Source: Podarcis filfolensis (Eukaryota). Taken from it: DNA of 64,000 bases. A program made the position numbers and the translations under genes. The stretch lies in the NCBI GenBank assembly GCA_964270895.1, contig OZ185449.1, one strand, 5' to 3'. Below, one piece after another: positions 13,053 to 27,600 of the stretch. The stretch's first letter is position 1. Every line of letters starts with the position of its first letter. The notes under the pieces are model-generated. The model worked only from the letters and a program-made list of their open reading frames with translations, was not told the DNA's origin and searched no databases.

Positions 13053-16000
13053 ATGGCCACCACAGAAGCTGCCTGCACTGGAAACAAACCTGGAGCCAAA
13101 TCTCCACTGGTAGAGGAAGGCCATCACCATCAGCGGCTGCAGGAAGAGAATGGGGCAGCTGACCAGCTCTCTGAGCACAGCGATGCCTCCTTTGCCACAG
13201 TGGAGCCCAGCCGCCAGCCGCCTCCTGCTGGGAAGCTCAGGAAGACTGCCTTCAAGCTCTTTGGTGGGAAGCGAAGCATCTGCACCCTGCCCAGTTTCTT
13301 TGGTGGGAAAAACAAAGGCCAGGGAAAGGGAGCTGCAAAAAAGGGCCTGAGCAAGAGCAAGACACACGATGGCATCAGCGACGTGGGGTACGAAGAGGCC
13401 AACTCGGGTGGTGGAACGGACTTCCCTCCTGCACAGCTGCCGAGTTCTCAGAGTGCTCTCCTAGGAGCAGACGCCAGCCTCAGGGTTGGTTTTGTCCGGC
13501 CGTCGGCATCCCTGTCTGGAAGCTCTGAGGGCTTTGAGAAGAAGCCCTGTGGGGAGAAGTCCTTGTTCCTTCCACGCTCTAAGAAGGGGCTCAGGGGCCT
13601 CTTCAACAGCATCCGGCGCCACAGGAAGAGCAAAAGCACTGAGCCCGAGAGGACTGAGTTGCAGGAGTGGACTTCAAGGGATGCTGTGGCTGAAGGACTG
13701 CCCAGTGCAAGTAAGCAGAAGAGGGGTGCCGAAACCCAGCAAGTCTTGAAGCAGGGGAGCCTAAAAAGCACTGCACTTCCCCCAGAACATGGGGAGCATT
13801 TTCGTGATGACGCTTCTTCTTCACCTGGAGTAGCGGCTGGTCTCGATGAGTCAAGAGAGGAGGTCCAACCGGTGGCCAACGAAAGCAGCTCTGTAGGGGA
13901 TGCAGCCAGAGGAGGGACGGGCAATGAAAGCTCTCGAGATGCAGAGCTGGAAGCAGATGACACCCTCTGTGCTAACTCTGTGTGCGGAGAGCTTCCTGAT
14001 GCTCTCCAGTCTGAGGACCTAGACAGTAGCCCTCCCTGTGTCCCATCTGGGGACCAGCTCAGCTTGATGTTTGGAGATGTCACTTCCCTCAAAAGCTTCG
14101 ACTCCTTTACCGGCTGCGGAGACATCATTGCTGAACCAGATATCGACAGCATTGCTGAGAGTGCCACCACTGCAGAGCGCGGCAGGGATGTGGCCAAGAG
14201 GAGCTCCTGCCTAGTTACTTACCAGGGTGGAGGGGAGGAGATGGCCATGCCAGATGACATAGAGGAGTATCTGCAGCAGATGTGGGAAGGTGCCATCAAA
14301 GCAGATGCTGGATACGAAACACGCCTTCCAGAACTCATGGCGAAATGTGAGCATCAGGGAGTGAACGGTGGCAAGCCAGAGGTCCACCTCTATCCTGAAG
14401 GCACAAGGGGTGACGTGGACCTCTTAACACCACACAGTGACCAGCAAGAATCTGCTCCCAACAGCGATGAGGGGTACTATGACTCTACCACTCCAGGTCC
14501 TGATGATGAAACTGGCGATGGGCTTGAAGAAATCAAGAAGGACCGCCTCCCGAGGGACAGCTACAGTGGCGATGCGCTGTATGAGTTCTATGAACCTGAT
14601 GATGCCCTCATGAGCCCCACTCGTGCTGATGAATCTTGGTTTGGTAGCAAAGTGTCCCCACCAGAGATCTTTTCCATGAGCCAGTTCTTGGACTTTGCTC
14701 TCCCTGACGAGAAGGACTTGGTGCAGATAATGGGCCAGAAGAGGGAAGTGATGGAAACGGAGGAGGAGAGGCTGGCTGCCATTCAGAAGCAGCTGCTCTT
14801 TTGGGAGATGCAGAGGGAGCCAACCTTGAAAGACCTGGATATCCTCAGCAAAGACCAGCACCACCCCAGAGAAAAGCTACATACGGAATGTAACACGAAA
14901 GTGACCAGCTTAACCGACAAGAGTCCGAGTGGCCTTGGCGGCGATCAAATGCCCCCCCCTGCTTTGAACAGTGGCCTGGATGCTGGAATTCTAACTGAGA
15001 AGCAAGAGTGGAAAGATTTCAAGGAGATGCTGTGCCCAGAGAAGCACTACAATGGCAGTGGGGGCCCTAAAGTGCACAGTGGGGGCCTTTTTCAGCACGT
15101 GGAAAATGGCTCAGTGTTGGATTCAGATAGAGAGCATCCAGGGCTTGAACCGGGTGCTTTAAGTGGCCTGGAGAATTCTGTGGCATTCCCTTTCTTCAAA
15201 ACGCACAGCTGTCCACTCAATGAGCAGCCAAGCAGAACCGAAGCTGACTTTGGGGAGCCCCCCAACATGGAAAATGAACCAGAACAGGCCGTTAATTTCT
15301 CCCAGGCATTGGTGGAGTTCACCAGCAGCGGGACTCTATTCTCCAGCCTCTCTGAAAGCCTTGGGAGCTCTGATTCAGGCTCTGCGTTCACCCAGAACCT
15401 CCCTGCCCTCCCAACGATGGTCACATTCGACATTGTCGACGTGGAGCAAGAAGGCGAAGGGGAGTGCGAGCAGCACCTGGGGATGAACACTGATGAGGAC
15501 ATCGCTGCATCCTTTGAGGCCTTTGACGATAGCTACACTGCAAAAGAATCCTTCGCCGAATGTGACGAGAGAATGTTTCCTGGGTGCTTCCAGAGCTCTT
15601 TCCAAAGCTGCAACTGGGGTGTCACCAGCCTTCCCCGGCGCATGAGGCTTCAGGAGATGAGTCCTCCCATGCCGGAGCCTCTCTCCAGCTGCAGGAGGAG
15701 CAGGTCCCTTGACACTGAGAGCTTGGAGTTCGAGCTGGCTAGCTTGCAACTCTCCAAGGGTGGCTTCAAGCCTTTTGACCTCTGGTCTCGATGGAGTGGC
15801 TGCAGGAAGGATCCTGTGTCTCCTGGTCTAGATGCAGACCGTGAAAATGCTCTGGGCTCTCCAGAAGGAAAGGAAGGAAGTGATGCTGCTGTCTTTCCTT
15901 GGGCAGAGCTGCAGCAGAATGTATCATGCAGGGAGGATTTTCCCTCGCAAGGCGTGAAACCGTGGGACTGTGATCTGAGCACCCCAGCCTTCCAGAGCAC

Positions 16001-16370
16001 GTGGGGTGCATCGGAACAGCCAGGTATGGAAGCACCTTGCATGCCCCTGGTGCAGGAATCCACCAAGGAGCCTGGTGGGAAACCTCGCGCAGATGGGGCC
16101 AGCGATCCAGCGCTGATGGCAACCAGACCAATGGCCAGGCCATCCAATTTGCCTTTGCAGACTCCTGCTGTGCCCCAGGAGGTGTCTGCCTCGCACAGGC
16201 CTGGTGGGGACAGCGCAGGTAAAAAACTTGCTTGGGTCCTTCCTTTGGGCGAGAAGGGGGCTGACCTGCCCCCGGACCCCAGCTTCACCCATTCCCCCGA
16301 CAAGCCAGCAATGTGCAAACCTGCAGGTGTGACGCAAGGAATGTCCCAGCTTCACAGCAAGCAGTGCTGA
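13053..16370 (+). CDS. AMER1: APC membrane recruitment protein 1 (WTX/FAM123B), 1105 aa, single coding exon
   Basis: Diagnostic motifs: KTAFKLFGGKRSICTLPSFFGG, GLSKSKTHDG, SIRRHRKSK, FGDVTSLKSFDSFTGCGDIIAE, KRSSCLVTYQGGGEEM, ESAPNSDEGYYDSTTPG, LPRDSYSGDALYEFY, METEEERLAAIQKQLL, FSQALVEFTS, RRSRSLDT. Strong Kozak context AGAATGG. Polypyrimidine acceptor tttctttcag| before 12969. Lacks the mammalian poly-Glu and REA repeats. Confidence 0.98.
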   Translation: MATTEAACTGNKPGAKSPLVEEGHHHQRLQEENGAADQLSEHSDASFATVEPSRQPPPAGKLRKTAFKLFGGKRSICTLPSFFGGKNKGQGKGAAKKGLSKSKTHDGISDVGYEEANSGGGTDFPPAQLPSSQSALLGADASLRVGFVRPSASLSGSSEGFEKKPCGEKSLFLPRSKKGLRGLFNSIRRHRKSKSTEPERTELQEWTSRDAVAEGLPSASKQKRGAETQQVLKQGSLKSTALPPEHGEHFRDDASSSPGVAAGLDESREEVQPVANESSSVGDAARGGTGNESSRDAELEADDTLCANSVCGELPDALQSEDLDSSPPCVPSGDQLSLMFGDVTSLKSFDSFTGCGDIIAEPDIDSIAESATTAERGRDVAKRSSCLVTYQGGGEEMAMPDDIEEYLQQMWEGAIKADAGYETRLPELMAKCEHQGVNGGKPEVHLYPEGTRGDVDLLTPHSDQQESAPNSDEGYYDSTTPGPDDETGDGLEEIKKDRLPRDSYSGDALYEFYEPDDALMSPTRADESWFGSKVSPPEIFSMSQFLDFALPDEKDLVQIMGQKREVMETEEERLAAIQKQLLFWEMQREPTLKDLDILSKDQHHPREKLHTECNTKVTSLTDKSPSGLGGDQMPPPALNSGLDAGILTEKQEWKDFKEMLCPEKHYNGSGGPKVHSGGLFQHVENGSVLDSDREHPGLEPGALSGLENSVAFPFFKTHSCPLNEQPSRTEADFGEPPNMENEPEQAVNFSQALVEFTSSGTLFSSLSESLGSSDSGSAFTQNLPALPTMVTFDIVDVEQEGEGECEQHLGMNTDEDIAASFEAFDDSYTAKESFAECDERMFPGCFQSSFQSCNWGVTSLPRRMRLQEMSPPMPEPLSSCRRSRSLDTESLEFELASLQLSKGGFKPFDLWSRWSGCRKDPVSPGLDADRENALGSPEGKEGSDAAVFPWAELQQNVSCREDFPSQGVKPWDCDLSTPAFQSTWGASEQPGMEAPCMPLVQESTKEPGGKPRADGASDPALMATRPMARPSNLPLQTPAVPQEVSASHRPGGDSAGKKLAWVLPLGEKGADLPPDPSFTHSPDKPAMCKPAGVTQGMSQLHSKQC

Positions 16371-16973
16371 GACCTTCTGATGGCAAGGTTGAGCGTCGTG
16401 GGAGCGCCGACTCTCTGATCTGCAGAAAGGGAAAGCCCCCACGTTGGAGGTGGCTGCTTGTGTTGCCAGCTGTTGGAACACCGCGATGAATGTAACAGTA
16501 GCCAAATAGCTTGCAGGAGAGGGTTAAAGGAGGATTAGGGTGGGTTGGTTCCCTTGGGCCCGCAGGGAGACTTGGAACATTACAGATGGTTAACTTTGAT
16601 TTGAAATTGGGTGGTGGTGGTAACCAATTCTTTCATTAGTGGTGGGTAAGGCAGAGTGTGCCTGATAGGACTTCTGTTATCACTCATCACTGCTTGATGG
16701 TGCTTCTTGTTGGGTTGATGCTGAATTGCACTTCCATAGTGTGAACCACTGTTAATCCTGAACACAATACAGGGGAAAGGTGCCAACACCTTGGCTTGGA
16801 GATATTCAGATATGATGTAAGAGAGCTCTGGGATGTCCAGCTTGCCCTTTAGTTAAAAGCAGAAAAAACAATTTCTTAAACCGACTAACTGGGTGCTTTT
16901 AAACAAAAAAACAGTGGTTGTAACAACTTTAAGAAATGGGGTGGTTTGCTGGTGGTAAAAAAAAACCCTATTT

Positions 16974-16979
16974 AATAAA
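16974..16979 (+). terminator. AMER1: Candidate proximal polyadenylation signal of AMER1
   Basis: AATAAA about 600 nt after the stop codon, followed by GU/U-rich gttctgtgtttttg. Confidence 0.5.
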
Positions 16980-17706
16980 CGTTCTGTGTTTTTGACAGCA
17001 CAACCTTTCTGTGCATTCCTTCTCTGGAAGCAAGCCCCCCCTGATTTCAGTGGGGCTTGCTCTCAGCTAGGGGTGCATTGGGTTGCAGCCTTGTAGTGCA
17101 GTCCTGTGCAGATCTACTCAGACGTAAGTGCCACCCTTTTCCAAGGGGGGGGGCTACTTGTAAGCAGTTGTGCATGCAGAGCCATCTGTATCAGGTGGCA
17201 TTTTGAAGATGAAATAAGACCTGCAAAGTGTGTTGCCTGCCAGGGGTGGGTGGGTGAGAGTGGCAAAGCATTGGGTATGTGGTTATAAGGAGGCAAAGTT
17301 TGGCCAGGGGAAAAGAAGTACTAGGAAGACATTTAAAAATTTGGTGTATTTTATTGATGGTGTCAGAGTGGAGTGGCACCCAAGTGACTGCAGAACTGCA
17401 GACTTCAAGGAGATATAGTATGTGTGTGCTTTAAGCTAAAAACAGCAAACCCTGTTTCAAACTGTATCCCTTTTTAAAGATTTGAGTCCCATTATTTCCT
17501 TATGACTAAATCTCACTCAGTGGGATGTCCAATGAAATGAATTCTCCTGTGTGCCCCCAGAACAGAGCCTCCCCCCCAAAAAATAATTTACTCTTGAATA
17601 CTTGGGTTCTAATGCAAATCTGGGCAAGCGTATTCACCATACTGTGGTTTAACTGGCTTGTGTAATGCAAGGCTGGCGTTCTGTTGTTTGTACATAAACT
17701 ATATCA

Positions 17707-17930
17707 AGGATGGGGAACCTGTGGCTCCCCAGGTGTGGCTGGGCTACAGCTCCCAGCACCCCTGACCATTGGCCATGCTGGCTAGGGCTAATGGGAGTTG
17801 GCTGTCTGGAGCATAGCTGTCAACTTTTCCCTTTTCTTGCGAGGAATCCTATTTGAAATAAGGGAATTTCTCTTTAAAAAAGGGAGACATTGACAGCTAT
17901 GGTCTGGAGGGAGCTATATGATGGACTTCT
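17707..17930. mobile_element. Palindromic ~130-bp squamate MITE, interrupted by a younger 90-bp MITE
   Basis: ggggaacctgtggc...gggctacagctccca...tgggagttgg family. Further copies near 7180, 8598, 9770, 18640, 21418, 27890, 44590, 58533, 59920, 60102, 60270 and 62200. Confidence 0.7.
17812..17901. mobile_element. 90-bp hAT MITE, copy 1
   Basis: Terminal inverted repeats (TIRs) CATAGCTGTCAA/TTGACAGCTATG. Perfect 8-bp TSD gtctggag. Confidence 0.92.
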
Positions 17931-20900
17931 GCTTATAGATGCTATGTTGCAAGGCCAAATGTGGCCTTCATTGGAAAATCTGTTTCCTCTCGTCCATGCA
18001 GGGCTGGCCCAAGAAGTTGATTGGAAAATCCAAATCTTTCCACACATGCAAACAGATGCTACTGTTTAATCAGCCAGAAAGGTCTCCATCAAAACTCCAC
18101 TTGAAGGGACTTGTGAAAGCATGTTGGAGCTGTTGGTGGGGATGTACAGGAGGGCTTCTTGGTGGATTGACCCCCAGGAATCAATTCTGTTCACCTCTTA
18201 CTCAGCTGCCCCTTATGGGATTGCAACATCTACTGCTTGAGGTGGACATAAGAAGAGCCCCTGTTGGATCAGGCCTATCTAGTTCAGCTTAGTTATTCTA
18301 ACTGTGGCCCATTAAATGCTTCCAGGAAGGCGGCAAGCAGGGCTTGAAGGAAACAGACCAGCCCCCCCCCCCCCGATCAACTTGCCTTGTGAGAAACCTG
18401 CCATGGCCTTCCACCCAGAAGTGATCTTTCTGAAAGGTAAGGCTGGCAGTAGAGGAGGGTCCTCAGAAATGCATGAAACTAGCACTGATCTGTCTAGTCG
18501 AATCTAGTCAACTCTTGACTAGCAGAAGCTGTCCAGGGATTCAAATTTGGGGGCGGGGTCTTCAAAGCCCACTATTCAAGGGGCCTTTTTTGGTTGCAGG
18601 GGGAGGAGATGCAAGAACCAAAGACTGGGGTGTCCTATATTGGAGGTGGGGAATCTGGCTCTCTGGATGTTGCTGGATTCCCATCAGCCCCAACCAGCAT
18701 GGGAGCTGTGATTTGTCTTCTGGTCCAGGAACACCTGGAGAGCCACAGGTTCCCCTCCCCTGCTGTACATGCAGAGCAAATGTTCTGCTGCTAAGGTGGG
18801 CCTTGCCCTCCTGTTAATTTGCTCTGGAAGAGTCATATCTGGCACGGTAGCTTTTAGGGGAAATCATTTTGAAAGAGGTGGTGCACAACTTGCTTCTTTG
18901 CTCAAGGAGTGCCCATACCTGCCAGTATTTGTTAGCTAATAAATCGGAGAAGAAGACCAGCAAGAGGAAAATCCTACATTAAAGCCAAGTCCCTTGAAGC
19001 TGCTGTCAGTACAAGGGCAACTTCAGAGGAAGGGCCCTACCTCACTGCTTTGCATTCAAAAGATCCCAGGTTCATTCCTTAGTGGCACCTCCAGGTACGG
19101 TTGGAAGGGGTTCCTGCCTGAAACCTTGGACAAATGCTGCCAGTCAGTGTAGACAGCACTGGGCTAGATTGGCAAAATGTTCTGATTTGGTATGAAGCAG
19201 TTTCTTATATTCTATCTTCCCTTCACTCTTGTTTTCTTTTTTTTAGCAGTACGTATGTAAATACTATGTAGTAAAACTCTAATTTTTTTAATATAGAAAA
19301 CCACACCTCTGACCAGCCTCTTATGAAAGATTAAACTTATTTCCTGCTGTAGCTCAGAGCAGGCCAAAGAGAGTGAGGAACCTGAGGTGGAAAATCCAAA
19401 TGGTTTATGTATACCTTAAACTAATTAAGATAGCATCGAGAAGTTTTCTTGCACTGGGCTCTTCCTGTTCCTTTGTGGGGCACTTTCTGTTCATTCCAGC
19501 AGGGCTCAGCTGGGAGAGTGTTGATGTACTTACCCAAAGGCCAGACCTGTCTCTGCCTATAGTACTTCATGGCACAACAAATCTCCTGTCTGTTCATCAT
19601 TTGCCCACCTCCAAAGGAGGATTAGCCATGTGAGATGGGTTGCCAGGTTTTTACCTTTCTGTTATCTCATGTGGCTAAACATCCCCTGAAGTTCAGAGGG
19701 GGCTAAGCACATGGCAAAAGGGTGTGTGTGGAGTTCTGAGCTAGCCAAGATTTCCCCCCTCAGTTGAGAACTACATGCCGACCTTTTCCACATACATCAC
19801 CCACTATGAAGGATGCTTCCTCACATGAGAGAACCTAGGCAACTGATAGCCCACCCTGTTCTAAATGCTAGTACAGAGGTGCTCTGAGAAGGCAGAGAGT
19901 TCACGCTCTCTTGCTGGGAGTGCATGCATGCCAGCAAGTTGAGCTGCATGCTAGCAAATCAGTTCTGTCCTGCTTTCTTTGCCTGGAGTGACACCTGACC
20001 GGAACTTCTTGTCTTGTGATTCTGTGTAATGTGTAGACTAGCTAGCAGCCTGCTCATCACTCCTGCCTTCACTAAGCAACTGAATTAACATCAAACCCAA
20101 ATCCTCCTTTGCTTTCAGTAGAAAGCGCAGTCAGTTGAATGTTCACAGAACTGGTGTCAGACTTTTGTTCTCAGTACACATGGGGCAGATTGAGGGTGAG
20201 GCTTGCACCCACATCCCTGCTCCTCTGAAGCTTTAGCTTTCAAGTGTTCAGGGGACTTAGGAAACAAGCTGGAGGGCAGTTGTGGATGAGGTCTTTCTCC
20301 TCAAGCTCTTGATTTGACAATGAATCCCTCCTGTGGGATGGAATGTAAACATTTGCTTAAAAGATAAGTATCTGAGCAAGACAGGGACACTGGGAACCAA
20401 ATGTCCAGATTCACAAATCCACCAATGTTAGATTGCATAGATCTTTTAGGCTTGATGTCTGCCTGATTAATGGCCCCATTGACCCAAACACAACCAATTG
20501 GCCATGCAAGGTAACTCACCGGGGGCCTAATAAGCCTCCATGTTTTGGTATCTGTGTGGGACTGCCAGTGAAGGAGCCTTGTCAAGCAGCTGCCGGGCCT
20601 GTCTAATTTTGCCTCTTTTCTGAATTGCTACCGCAAACTAGAACTATTAATGATCATACTGTGTCGCACACAGGTTTTCACTGTGGCCTGCCTTGGCCAA
20701 GTCTTCAGTGTGTTTTGGGTTAGGTTGGTGGCATGGCAGGTCCCCCCGCCCCCCATTTTCCTTTTGAACACATCACCAAAGACATCTTGTGAAGTTTGTT
20801 GTCAAATGGTGTAACTCTTGTTGATAATGTATTTGTGTAAAAAAACAACAACAACAACCAACAACTCTGTGTTAATAAGAATGTTCTTCTACAAATGTGT

Positions 20901-24610: not shown

Positions 24611-27600
24611 TACTGTAATCGAAGAAGAAGAAAAACCTTGCCTGAGAGTAAGTCCTACTGAATTCAATAGGGGTTACTTCTAATGGAACATGATTAGGAT
24701 TGTACTGTAAGGCACAGAATGATGGGCTGCTTAAATTGTACAGGTGTTTCTCCCTCCTTTGTAACACCAGAAGGGATCATAAAAAACAACAACAACATTG
24801 ATTAGTGGTAGATTCAGAAGACAAGAGTTTCTTCATTGCATGCATAATGCAACTTACGGAATTGGCTGCCTTAGGATTCATTTATTTTATTCTATTCCAT
24901 GTATGTCCCTTCTTTCCTCCATAGAGCTTACTGTGGCATACATGTTTCTCCCTCCCCCCTAATGCTACATATATAATGCAGGTCAGATTACCAGGTGCTG
25001 TGCCTACACTGCACATCCGAGATTTATCTATTTTTCTATAGGTTTCATTGTTGTTGTATACATTCATGGAAAAATTTTATGGGCTGTTCTTTTTACTGTC
25101 TATTTTTAAAGAAAGGTGCAATTTGCAGTTTTGAAAGGGGGGAAAGCATTGGCTACTGCTTATACATGTGCAAAACAGTGGCGGGGGCGCAGCATGCTGT
25201 TCAGAGGTCATTGCTGCACTATAAACTGACAGCTATCTTGGAAGATTTTAAACCCCCCCTACCTTTTTCATTCACACATACCCCTTGCTTTTCTGGGCTC
25301 TAATATGCATTTAATAACTTTTTGTAACCCTTGTCGAATACTGTTTTGTGGTGTTCTCTCTCTCTCTGTGTCTTTATTTCTGCTTTTGATCTGTAAAGGG
25401 TGTCCCATTTTTTTTCTTGCAGGTCTTGGTTGCTACTTAAAGCTAATAAACTTGCATATTCCCCCCTCCCCTTCCTTTTGGTGAAAACTTGATCCACAGC
25501 TAGGATGGTTCTCCCCTAGATTTACATTAACAGAAAAAAGGGAAATGCTAAATGCCGTGAAATGTTTTCTCTGTTGAATAAGGTAGCCAAGTTCCTTTTC
25601 CATTTTTTTTTCCTGGCTGGTCCTTTTTAGTAAACTATGCCTCCTTGAGTTAGCTATGCTTTCATTCCGCATTCATTGGCAAGAATGTGGATTGACATCA
25701 TGCTTTGTTATGGGGGGAATTTGGATGAAACTTAAAACATCTGAGTACTCTTCCTCCCTCAAAGATAAGAGGACTGATTCTAATAAGTAAAAATCAAATG
25801 CATTCCAATAGTTCTACTTTTCTTTGGAAGGAGATCACTGCAAAGTCCTCATATGGCCTTGTATCAGTTGAAGAGCACTGTTCACATCTCAGTGTCAATT
25901 CCTGCCATTATCTGTCTTTATTGCACCACCTTCAGGCTTGTGGGGTATACTTTTGCTTTTCACTGAGGACCAGCAGCTGAAGTCAGGTGCCACTGAACCC
26001 AGGAATTTTGCTTTGAAGTGCAAAACCAAGTGGAGCTCCCAGTCCTTCCATACAGAAATGCACTCCTGGCTACCCCCAAGCTTTCTAACATTTCTGCAGT
26101 ACCATTTAAGGCAGGGAGCAGAGTTGTTGTGTTGCTGCTATTCTTAACCAGTTGGGAGTCAGAAATCCTTGAGATCTCCCAGCAGATGCAGATCCACCTT
26201 CTGCCTACCCCAGCCATGAAAGTATGCAATGCAAGGCAAAAAGTGATGCGGCATTCGAAGGATGACAGTGTATTTCCTGCCACTGGGTTTTGATAAACCT
26301 GTCCTGCAGCTTCTCAGGCATAACTGGGGACAGGCTGACACTGATTGTTTTACAGCTGAGGTGGTTTTATCTCCAGGGCCAATATGGTTTTTGTAATGCC
26401 TGTGCAACCAGTAATGCATCTCTGCTTTTTTGCAAGTGAGGAATATAATTCTCTATATATTCCCCCCTTAAAAAAAAAACAAGCCCAACCCTATCTGTTG
26501 CACAAATGGAAGAAAGAGATTGAGGACTGGCTGACTGGCTGATGAAACTACCTCTTAGCTGCAAAGCTGGGTTACACCATGAAGAACCCAGCTGTAACAT
26601 CAGTCTTCACCTTTCACAATGCTTGGATACTCCTGCACTGACTGAAGATGGGTGCAGTAACATATGGGGTTCCAACCACTTGGTCTTTCCTGTCCGTATC
26701 CTTGTGTACCTATTAATACTTCCAGGGTCATGCCTGGAGACTGATGCATGACTGTTTTGCAGAGCATTTCCTAAGTGTATGTCTCATCATTGCGTTTTTT
26801 CCTACAGGACCCTCAGTGTGGGGCATTGCTTCTCCCAGTGTTTTTGAGGGGTCTCTTACCAGTTTCAGCTTTCCTGCTTCAGGTTACCTAAAGTGAAAGA
26901 GAAGGCACACATTCATAACTGAGAATGGCAGGAATTGAAAATAATTGTAAGAGGCCCCCCCTTTCTACCCCCAAAAGGGAGTTGGTATCTGCTTTGCAAA
27001 GCTGTGAAGATAATCTCCCTATTTTTTTTGGGGGGGGGGATAATTTGATAGTTCACTTGGTGCTCATTTTCCAAAATAAGTTATAAGAGCTGGTCTGCCA
27101 TACTGGTTTGCTAAAAATGGCTCAAAGCTCACCGCTGCTAGGTGAGCCACCTCTGTAGGTGACTACCTTCAGTTATTCACTGTTGGCTGGCTCTTAATCT
27201 GTGATGAGTGGATAAGAACGCTGATCTACTTTACAGAGTTGCTCACACTCATTGTGAAGAACAGAGAGTGGTTTTCATCCTTGCTGCAACACTGGGCTAG
27301 GAGGAGAAACCTCCCACCCCAGAGCTGTCATGGGGATGAAAAACATTGACTTAACTTTGTTAGATCTGCTCTTTTGCCTGTTTCCTAAAGTGCTAAGACC
27401 TAACAATATTGCTGTGCCAGAAGAGGATAAGCCCCCTTTGCCAGGTAAATGGAGGTCCAAAGGGAGAGGCTAGGCCCCTGGTTTTTGCAAAGGGCTGGTG
27501 AGCCACTGGAAGTAGCTTCATGGGCTGGATACAGGCGTGTGGGCTTTGCACCCATGTTATGGGAATTAGTGACATAATGTCTGTAAGATGCTTTAAATTA

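Follow-up and report, generated by a model that had tools for sequence, protein, structure and literature searches.

A one-base insertion behind an early AMER1 stop codon shared by lacertids, monitors, snakes and iguanians, and a short conserved segment at the former terminus

AMER1 in a 64,000-nucleotide stretch of Podarcis filfolensis DNA (hereafter the window; contig OZ185449.1 of assembly GCA_964270895.1) ended about 46 codons early, and the same early end was found in other lacertids, in Varanus, in snakes and, with a later modification, in iguanians. The abandoned coding tail lay behind the new stop codon and had decayed at two rates: most of it had diverged to the level of neutral sites, and some 26 bases surrounding the former stop had changed little. 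Comparison of the sequences points to a genuine truncation that probably arose once, through insertion of a single base, and to a constraint on the retained bases that would not depend on translation. We consider this account, graded as one whole, to be highly probable.

The open reading frame belonged to the AMER family (PF09422), scoring 327 bits over residues 49-521 (E = 3.4e-97), where the cut-off is 26. Its top matches, from lacertids, Varanus, geckos and snakes, carried the name AMER1, indicating that it was the AMER1 orthologue, and in the gene tree the lacertids, the snakes, and the skink with the cordylid clustered as the species groups predict. Over residues 700-1105, the region searched, the protein was 99% identical to that of Podarcis raffonei and 59-68% identical to those of gecko, skink, turtle and crocodilian. 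Over the full 1105 residues it differed at 9 positions from P. raffonei, 18 from P. lilfordi, 19-20 from P. muralis and 42 from Lacerta agilis; P. raffonei was the nearest database AMER1 to the product of 13053-16367. Human AMER1 is described with a single long coding exon (PMC7760256). The window gene shared its orthology, the Pfam AMER domain and the single long coding exon with AMER1 (WTX, FAM123B) of other amniotes; however, its protein lacked the last 46 residues (...NVTVAK) and ended in KQC.

Re-translation recovered the frame layout and stop coordinates described in a first-pass annotation of the window. Frame 1 (16203+3k) read ...KPAGVTQGMSQLHSKQC, followed by TGA at 16368-16370. Frame 2 (16204+3k) read SSAETF at 16360-16377, was interrupted by TGA at 16378-16380 and again at 16390-16392, and then ran for 38 codons (16393-16506) ending ...ASCWNTAMNVTVAK before TAG at 16507-16509; frame 3 read DGKVERRGSADSL at 16379-16417. 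The ancestral reading was split accordingly between frame 2 (16360-16377), frame 3 (16379-16417) and frame 2 again (from 16417 onward), and the sauropsid terminus ...(T/A)xNVTxAK was out of frame, its motif standing at 16486-16506 in frame 2, 116 bases beyond the frame-1 stop. Two frame changes had been proposed for this arrangement. The path from frame 1 through frame 3 to frame 2 was a fair summary, but the DNA alignment held more indels than two: +1 near 16359, about +1 near 16378, +2 near 16412, +1 in the C-run at 16436-16440 and +5 near 16459-16463.

Residues 700-1105 served as query in a word-indexed protein search, which gave 322 AMER1 relatives; the last 110 residues were inspected in the best 63. 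Among these, AMER1 ended in ...(T/A)xNV(T/S/M)xAK* in geckos (Eublepharis, Euleptes, Sphaerodactylus and Paroedura), skinks (Lerista), the cordylid Hemicordylus, turtles, palaeognaths and Galloanserae, and in NVTEAE* in many Neoaves. The presence of NVTxAK in geckos, skinks, the cordylid, turtles and birds indicates that it was the ancestral sauropsid terminus, and the annotation had been right to regard it as conserved. Turtle, crocodilian and bird proteins carried the tail, showing that the truncated state was derived. The ancestral terminus lay 46 residues beyond the QLH-x position; Lerista had 46 residues after the frameshift point where the window had KQC, which bears out the annotation's suggestion of a real loss of about 46 residues with a legible fossil tail. 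In BLASTP, significance was confined to the final 14 residues of the frame-2 reading, with 9 of 14 identical to Hemicordylus (E = 6e-5, for a single comparison). The remainder of the tail was recognizable at the DNA level only, against intact lineages (67-69% identity).

The cause of the early stop was located by aligning the window with genomic loci of eleven squamates and one turtle. An extra base stood in the same column in Podarcis, Lacerta, Zootoca, Varanus, Liasis, Thamnophis, Sceloporus and Pogona, that is, in all eight truncated species that could be read there. It was absent from Lerista, Eublepharis and Hemicordylus, all of which read CAC-NNN-AGC-AAY-GCN-GAG. In Anolis the site was unreadable because of a later 4-base deletion. 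The extra base turned S-N/S-A-E into K-Q-C-stop, so that a frameshift relative to the outgroups, as in a pseudogenised segment, was visible in independent assemblies. Over the 12 bases 16359-16370, Varanus was identical to the window at all 12 positions and the two snakes at 11 each. The protein ends agreed with the DNA: AMER1 ended in ...SQLHNKQC* in Varanus, in ...HTKQC* in Liasis, Notechis, Naja, Erythrolamprus and one Logan snake, and in ...HTEQC* in Thamnophis. In Candoia aspera (P0015) the stop after KQC had been lost and four residues added (KQCGAHL), and with this species included at least seven snakes had a KQC-type end. Sceloporus, Pogona and Anolis (loci L003, L009 and L011) carried a second +1 after GGTGT, equivalent to 16330/16331 and about 30 bases upstream of the first; their proteins read the window's frame 3 (...VDAKNV.ASQQAE...), with an end whose length differed from genus to genus.

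When the tail columns were left out of the AMER1 codon alignment, its maximum-likelihood tree separated the eight truncated taxa from the four intact taxa by a branch with support 100/99, indicating that one change suffices. The insertion therefore probably dates to the common stem of Lacertoidea and Toxicofera, as judged from the aligned loci, and is not specific to lacertids. The truncation was common to all sampled Lacertidae, Varanidae, Serpentes and Iguania, and the annotation's wording of a lineage-specific loss was too narrow. Squamate dating places the stem of Lacertoidea and Toxicofera at roughly 170-190 million years ago.

The former tail had decayed in most of its length. Fourfold-degenerate sites of AMER1 served as the neutral yardstick; identity at these sites was 0.45-0.58 between Podarcis and the non-lacertid squamates and turtle, and truncated lineages were separated by about 0.62-0.85 substitutions per site. 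Identity of 16359-16454 to the other truncated lineages was 0.49-0.61, which is the neutral level (0.49-0.58 at the fourfold sites). Against intact lineages it was 0.60-0.69, and the Jukes-Cantor expectation was about 0.68 if only the lizard side had drifted. Homology in blastn ended at 16371-16388 against Varanus, Sceloporus, Pogona, Thamnophis and the turtle, and was continuous through the tail against Lerista and Eublepharis. Within lacertids the tail was 0.947-0.974 identical, similar to the 0.936-0.937 of the adjacent 3' untranslated region (3'UTR). Beyond the shared insertion, the lacertid tail had two stops and further shifts of about +1, +2, +1 and +5 bases, and one C more in Lacerta put NVTVAK* in a different frame from that in Podarcis and Zootoca. 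In the python, three-frame translation past the stop left most of the old tail legible in one shifted frame (...SNAETTFKGRAEHWGSS...). Neutral divergence with lineage-specific stops and indels was thus found in 16371-16484 and not in the island at 16486-16511.

This island, ATGAATGTAACAGTAGCCAAATAGCT, was the exception to the decay. In blastn it appeared as an isolated match of 25-27 nt at 89-92% identity (16485-16513) in Varanus, Sceloporus and turtle, and as part of a longer match in Pogona (16486-16542, 81%). Compared with the consensus of four intact species, the island matched at 26 of 26 positions in lacertids, 23 of 26 in Varanus, 24 of 26 in Pogona, 22 of 26 in Sceloporus and 20-21 of 24 in snakes. 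Each truncated lineage was therefore 83-100% identical to the intact-lineage consensus, and the intact lineages themselves matched it at 23-25 of 26. Pooled over the four early-diverging truncated lineages, 91-94 of 102 positions matched (89-92%), giving P values of about 5e-8 to 0.01 for neutral expectations of 0.70-0.80, uncorrected for the post hoc choice of the window compared. The changes within the island did not follow the code. Two bases within it were missing in snakes and two extra ones were present in Anolis, in both cases with loss of the AK* reading, and first or second codon positions had changed in Varanus (T>P) and in iguanians (V>K). Indels that are not multiples of three, together with these first- and second-position changes, argue for constraint on nucleotides and not on protein, so that codon-level constraint on the tail, which the annotation had proposed to look for, was not supported. 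The third positions of the AAT, first GTA, GCC and AAA codons were invariant in the four intact species with DNA, which suggests that the nucleotide constraint predates the frameshift. The tail was legible mainly because this segment of 26-29 bases was conserved at the nucleotide level. A legible tail is accordingly no evidence of recent loss or of ongoing codon-level constraint.

Taken in order, the proposed events would be as follows. A single base would have been inserted just after the ...QLH-x codon and fixed in the ancestor of lacertoids, anguimorphs, snakes and iguanians, so that KQC and a stop took the place of the 46 terminal residues (...SNAEAF...MNVTVAK). The former coding tail would then have become 3'UTR, with 16371-16484 drifting near the neutral rate and gathering stops and indels that differ between lineages, and about 26 bases at the old stop would have been held by a translation-independent constraint. 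Iguanians would later have acquired the second +1, about 30 bases upstream, and moved into yet another frame. The island would most likely be a cis-acting RNA signal that overlapped the coding end before the frameshift. The tail could still be read in the window partly through this constraint and partly, on this account, because intact lineages kept it and change occurred only on the lizard side.

An error in the assembly, which the annotation had offered as its second explanation (two local errors), and an independent origin in lacertids were weighed against a single ancestral insertion. An artefact would need two or more base-count errors that break an intact reading frame of 1150 aa. Nothing was found in its favor beyond one weak point, namely that assembled contigs and not raw reads were compared. 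AMER1 was 1104-1105 aa long in P. raffonei, P. lilfordi, P. muralis, Lacerta agilis and Zootoca vivipara (the 90% cluster of the best match), five lacertids assembled independently with an identical stop; the frame layout was equal in Podarcis and Zootoca, and Lacerta departed from it by a single C. Logan contigs from four runs (two from samples with the window's organism label, two with other labels) spanned 15500-17700 with the same stop and layout. No indels were listed in these contigs at 15500-16543, and the only substitutions in the tail were at 16389, 16407 and 16463, leaving the stop unaffected. Run X17, which had been guessed to be RNA, yielded a single contiguous contig; its repeat depths resembled those of the three DNA runs, and it had no bearing on transcription. 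Because base counts agreed across the five lacertids and the four runs, and because Varanus and the snakes had the same KQC* end, the artefact was rejected and its probability is negligible. Convergence would make the lacertid loss younger, so that the tail would be legible with no extra constraint. It would fit the perfect 26/26 match of the lacertid island to the intact-lineage consensus and a lacertid tail that looks somewhat nearer to intact taxa than do the tails of Varanus and snakes. However, lacertids, Varanus and snakes shared the same column and the same K-Q-C-stop, and a second origin is unparsimonious when one change on the well-supported gene tree is enough. The lacertid tail also carried two stops and no fewer than four indels beyond the insertion, and when compared with other truncated lineages it was at the neutral level of identity. 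We regard convergence as very improbable, and the single insertion remains the preferred reading.

Continued translation of the tail and chance preservation of the island bear on how the retained bases are to be explained. If the frameshifted stretch were a short intron, or were bypassed by recoding, KQC* would be wrong or would belong to one isoform, and the island would simply encode MNVTVAK. In-frame GT..AG pairs do exist (e.g., donor 16327 or 16329 with acceptors 16393-16449, or acceptor 16469 with several donors), and the ancestral stop was still TAG or TAA in all aligned species but one. However, about one third of GT..AG pairs fall in frame by chance. All 48 in-frame pairs were enumerated and were poor, none combining a good donor with a good acceptor, and acceptors at or before 16435 gave the wrong frame in Lacerta if its extra C is real; a frame-restoring short intron was set aside as unlikely. 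Ribosomal frameshifting into frame 2 was also rejected, since the two TGA codons right after the shift exclude its simple form. The non-3n island indels in snakes (-2) and Anolis (+2) abolish the AK* reading, the island changes in Varanus and iguanians lack a third-position bias, and none of the retrieved lacertid, Varanus or snake protein models ended in NVTVAK. Translation of the tail is therefore quite improbable, though a little less so than convergence. A functionless island that decayed slowly by chance, for example under a locally low mutation rate, and that looks special through post hoc choice, is a more serious competitor that we still think unlikely. The segment is short (26-29 nt) and was chosen after the fact, snakes had changed 3-4 of 24 aligned bases in addition to their 2-base deletion, and neither a family in Rfam nor a conserved fold in alifold was obtained for it. 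Against this, four early-split lineages kept 83-100% of it when identity fell to 42-61% in the 110 bases before and the 100 after. It was also the sole match between the stop and the downstream UTR in the comparisons with Varanus, Sceloporus and turtle, and the four synonymous positions were already invariant in the intact lineages. A translation-independent constraint on the island is thus the reading retained here.

Several points count against the account as a whole. The island was picked after the alignment had been viewed, and its P values need a correction of about 5- to 100-fold; the neutral expectation behind them came from 260-330 fourfold sites by an approximate Jukes-Cantor calculation. 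The node of origin was placed with four major lineages, with teiids, amphisbaenians, anguids, dibamids and tuatara unsampled. The extra C of Lacerta was a homopolymer difference in a single assembly. Six indel rows outside 15500-16543 were unlisted, so that a small single-run indel elsewhere in the 3 kb is possible. The unspliced state of 16327-16470 and the end of translation at 16368 are both predictions from the sequence.

Two candidate roles emerged for the island. A structured RNA was rejected: Rfam at permissive thresholds gave no match at the island, and alifold over 13 species gave a consensus energy of -0.37 with no helix there. The splice-site candidate, AAT/GTAACA at 16489-16497, came from isoforms of birds, kiwi and turtle (P0019, P0025, P0030, P0031 and P0042), which leave the canonical terminus right after ...VN (...VN/C.PPLS... 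or ...VN/GKFY...). In the turtle locus (L012), the main-exon match stopped at ...GTGAAT, followed by GTAATG, and the GT at 16492-16493 was kept in all aligned species except snakes. The Eretmochelys isoform X3 (...TTVN/GKFYGLFF...) implied a junction from ...GTGAAT (5438/5439 of L012) to GGGAAA (10169/10170). The intron as read was GT..AA and not GT..AG, which fails to confirm the donor; at this locus, the isoform model or the assembly departs from the annotated version. A possible splice partner was found 8.6 kb downstream of AMER1, at 25023-25093, by tblastn (KFYGLFF..., E = 7e-4) and by blastn to 10130-10194 of L012 (78% over 72 nt, E = 3e-7). Either a conserved alternative 3' exon or a non-coding element could lie here. 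Just upstream, a strong acceptor-like sequence (TTTATCTATTTTT.TATAG) was conserved in window and turtle.

The second candidate was an 8-mer, TGAATGTA, that matches the miR-181 seed. It was kept in 10 of the 13 aligned species (the lacertids, Varanus, Sceloporus, Pogona, Anolis, Lerista, Hemicordylus and turtle), was lost in both snakes and read GGAATGTA in Eublepharis. The literature search returned no paper that ties AMER1 to miR-181 as a target. Neither the splice site nor the microRNA match accounts for the best-kept part of the island, GCCAAATAGCT. On the available comparisons, we propose only tentatively, and with some doubt, that the island may be a working RNA signal older than the frameshift that outlived its coding role, either as a weak 5' splice site or as a binding site for a microRNA or a protein. 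If so, the splice version would join AMER1 transcripts to the conserved exon-like element at 25023-25093. Lizard and snake transcripts would then have an intron in the 3'UTR, over 100 bases beyond the stop, which would expose them to nonsense-mediated decay by design of the gene itself. On either version, some ten thousand species without the tail would amount to a natural experiment, separating what these bases do in protein from what they do in RNA. The features are collected in Table 1.

Table 1. Features of the AMER1 3' region in the window, with positions, strand and basis.
Feature	Position	Strand	Basis
AMER1 coding sequence, single exon, 1105 aa, ending ...SQLHSKQC + TGA	13053..16370	+	ORF list, translation, Pfam AMER
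One-base insertion site (AGC-A-AGC, at about 16359); shifts ancestral ...H-x-SNAEAF... and makes KQC*	16356..16362	+	DNA alignment
Present stop codon TGA	16368..16370	+	sequence; no base change there in four runs
Decayed former coding tail, now 3'UTR, with TGA 16378-16380 and 16390-16392	16371..16484	+	translations, DNA alignment, identity, blastn
C-run, length variable among lacertids	16436..16440	+	Lacerta one C more than Podarcis and Zootoca
Conserved island, 26-mer: last seven ancestral codons, ancestral stop, two more bases	16486..16511	+	blastn, consensus comparison
Island segment TGAATGTA, candidate 8-mer match to miR-181 seed	16487..16494	+	seed comparison, alignment
Candidate weak 5' splice-site-like sequence, AAT then GTAACA	16492..16497	+	isoform divergence point, alignment
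Ancestral stop TAG, now within 3'UTR	16507..16509	+	TAA in Sceloporus and Anolis, CAG in Liasis, TAG in every other aligned species
Downstream element, homologue of the turtle isoform's alternative last coding exon; possible splice partner of the island	25023..25093	+	tblastn, blastn

The AMER1 truncation is a fresh example of a familiar event, in which a frameshift shortens a gene across a clade and the remnant decays. Such truncations serve as rare genomic changes in phylogenetics, and the present case resembles them in having one indel in a conserved gene, common to some lineages and missing from the outgroups, with lineage-specific decay downstream. It differs in marking a clade of the molecular trees with iguanians nested inside, and in that part of the abandoned coding sequence stays conserved. 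The one-base insertion, with the second insertion of iguanians, makes a clean rare genomic change that places iguanians in one group with snakes, anguimorphs and lacertids and leaves geckos and skinks outside; molecular trees agree with this grouping, and classical morphology did not. The island resembles coding ends that hold regulatory RNA signals, being constrained at four synonymous positions and still constrained once untranslated. However, it has candidates only (the miR-181 match and the weak 5' splice site), and both were lost in snakes. It indicates that bases at the end of a reading frame can be held by a constraint other than protein, and it cautions against taking a legible out-of-frame tail for a recent loss or an assembly error.

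AMER1/WTX is a Wnt-pathway tumour suppressor and a bone-disease gene whose extreme C-terminus is conserved across sauropsids. Lacertids, monitors, snakes and iguanians do without this tail, which bounds how essential it can be, and squamate dating puts its loss well over 100 million years back. Literature on AMER1 retrieved with squamate or frameshift terms gave no account of this truncation and no paper tying the gene to squamates, and lizards and the extreme C-terminus were unmentioned in a review of the AMER family (PMC2949870).

Other features were seen downstream in the 3' region. A short 3'UTR stretch at 16627-16678 was 79% identical to Varanus over 52 bases. A TTTGATTTGAA block near 16596-16606 was common to both snakes, with one mismatch in Thamnophis, and had the form TTTGATTTAGAA in Varanus. 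Summed contig depth, with depths given per contig, reached 10^5-10^6 at 17720-17920 in all four runs and rose more weakly at 17015-17215 and 18227-18327. These high-depth stretches contained many inverted and back-joined contigs, and they look like a very high-copy interspersed repeat of SINE (short interspersed nuclear element) type. Under permissive settings Rfam gave only two microRNA-family matches, at 17010-17079 and 17804-17911; both were far below threshold and lay in the repeat-like stretches of high depth.

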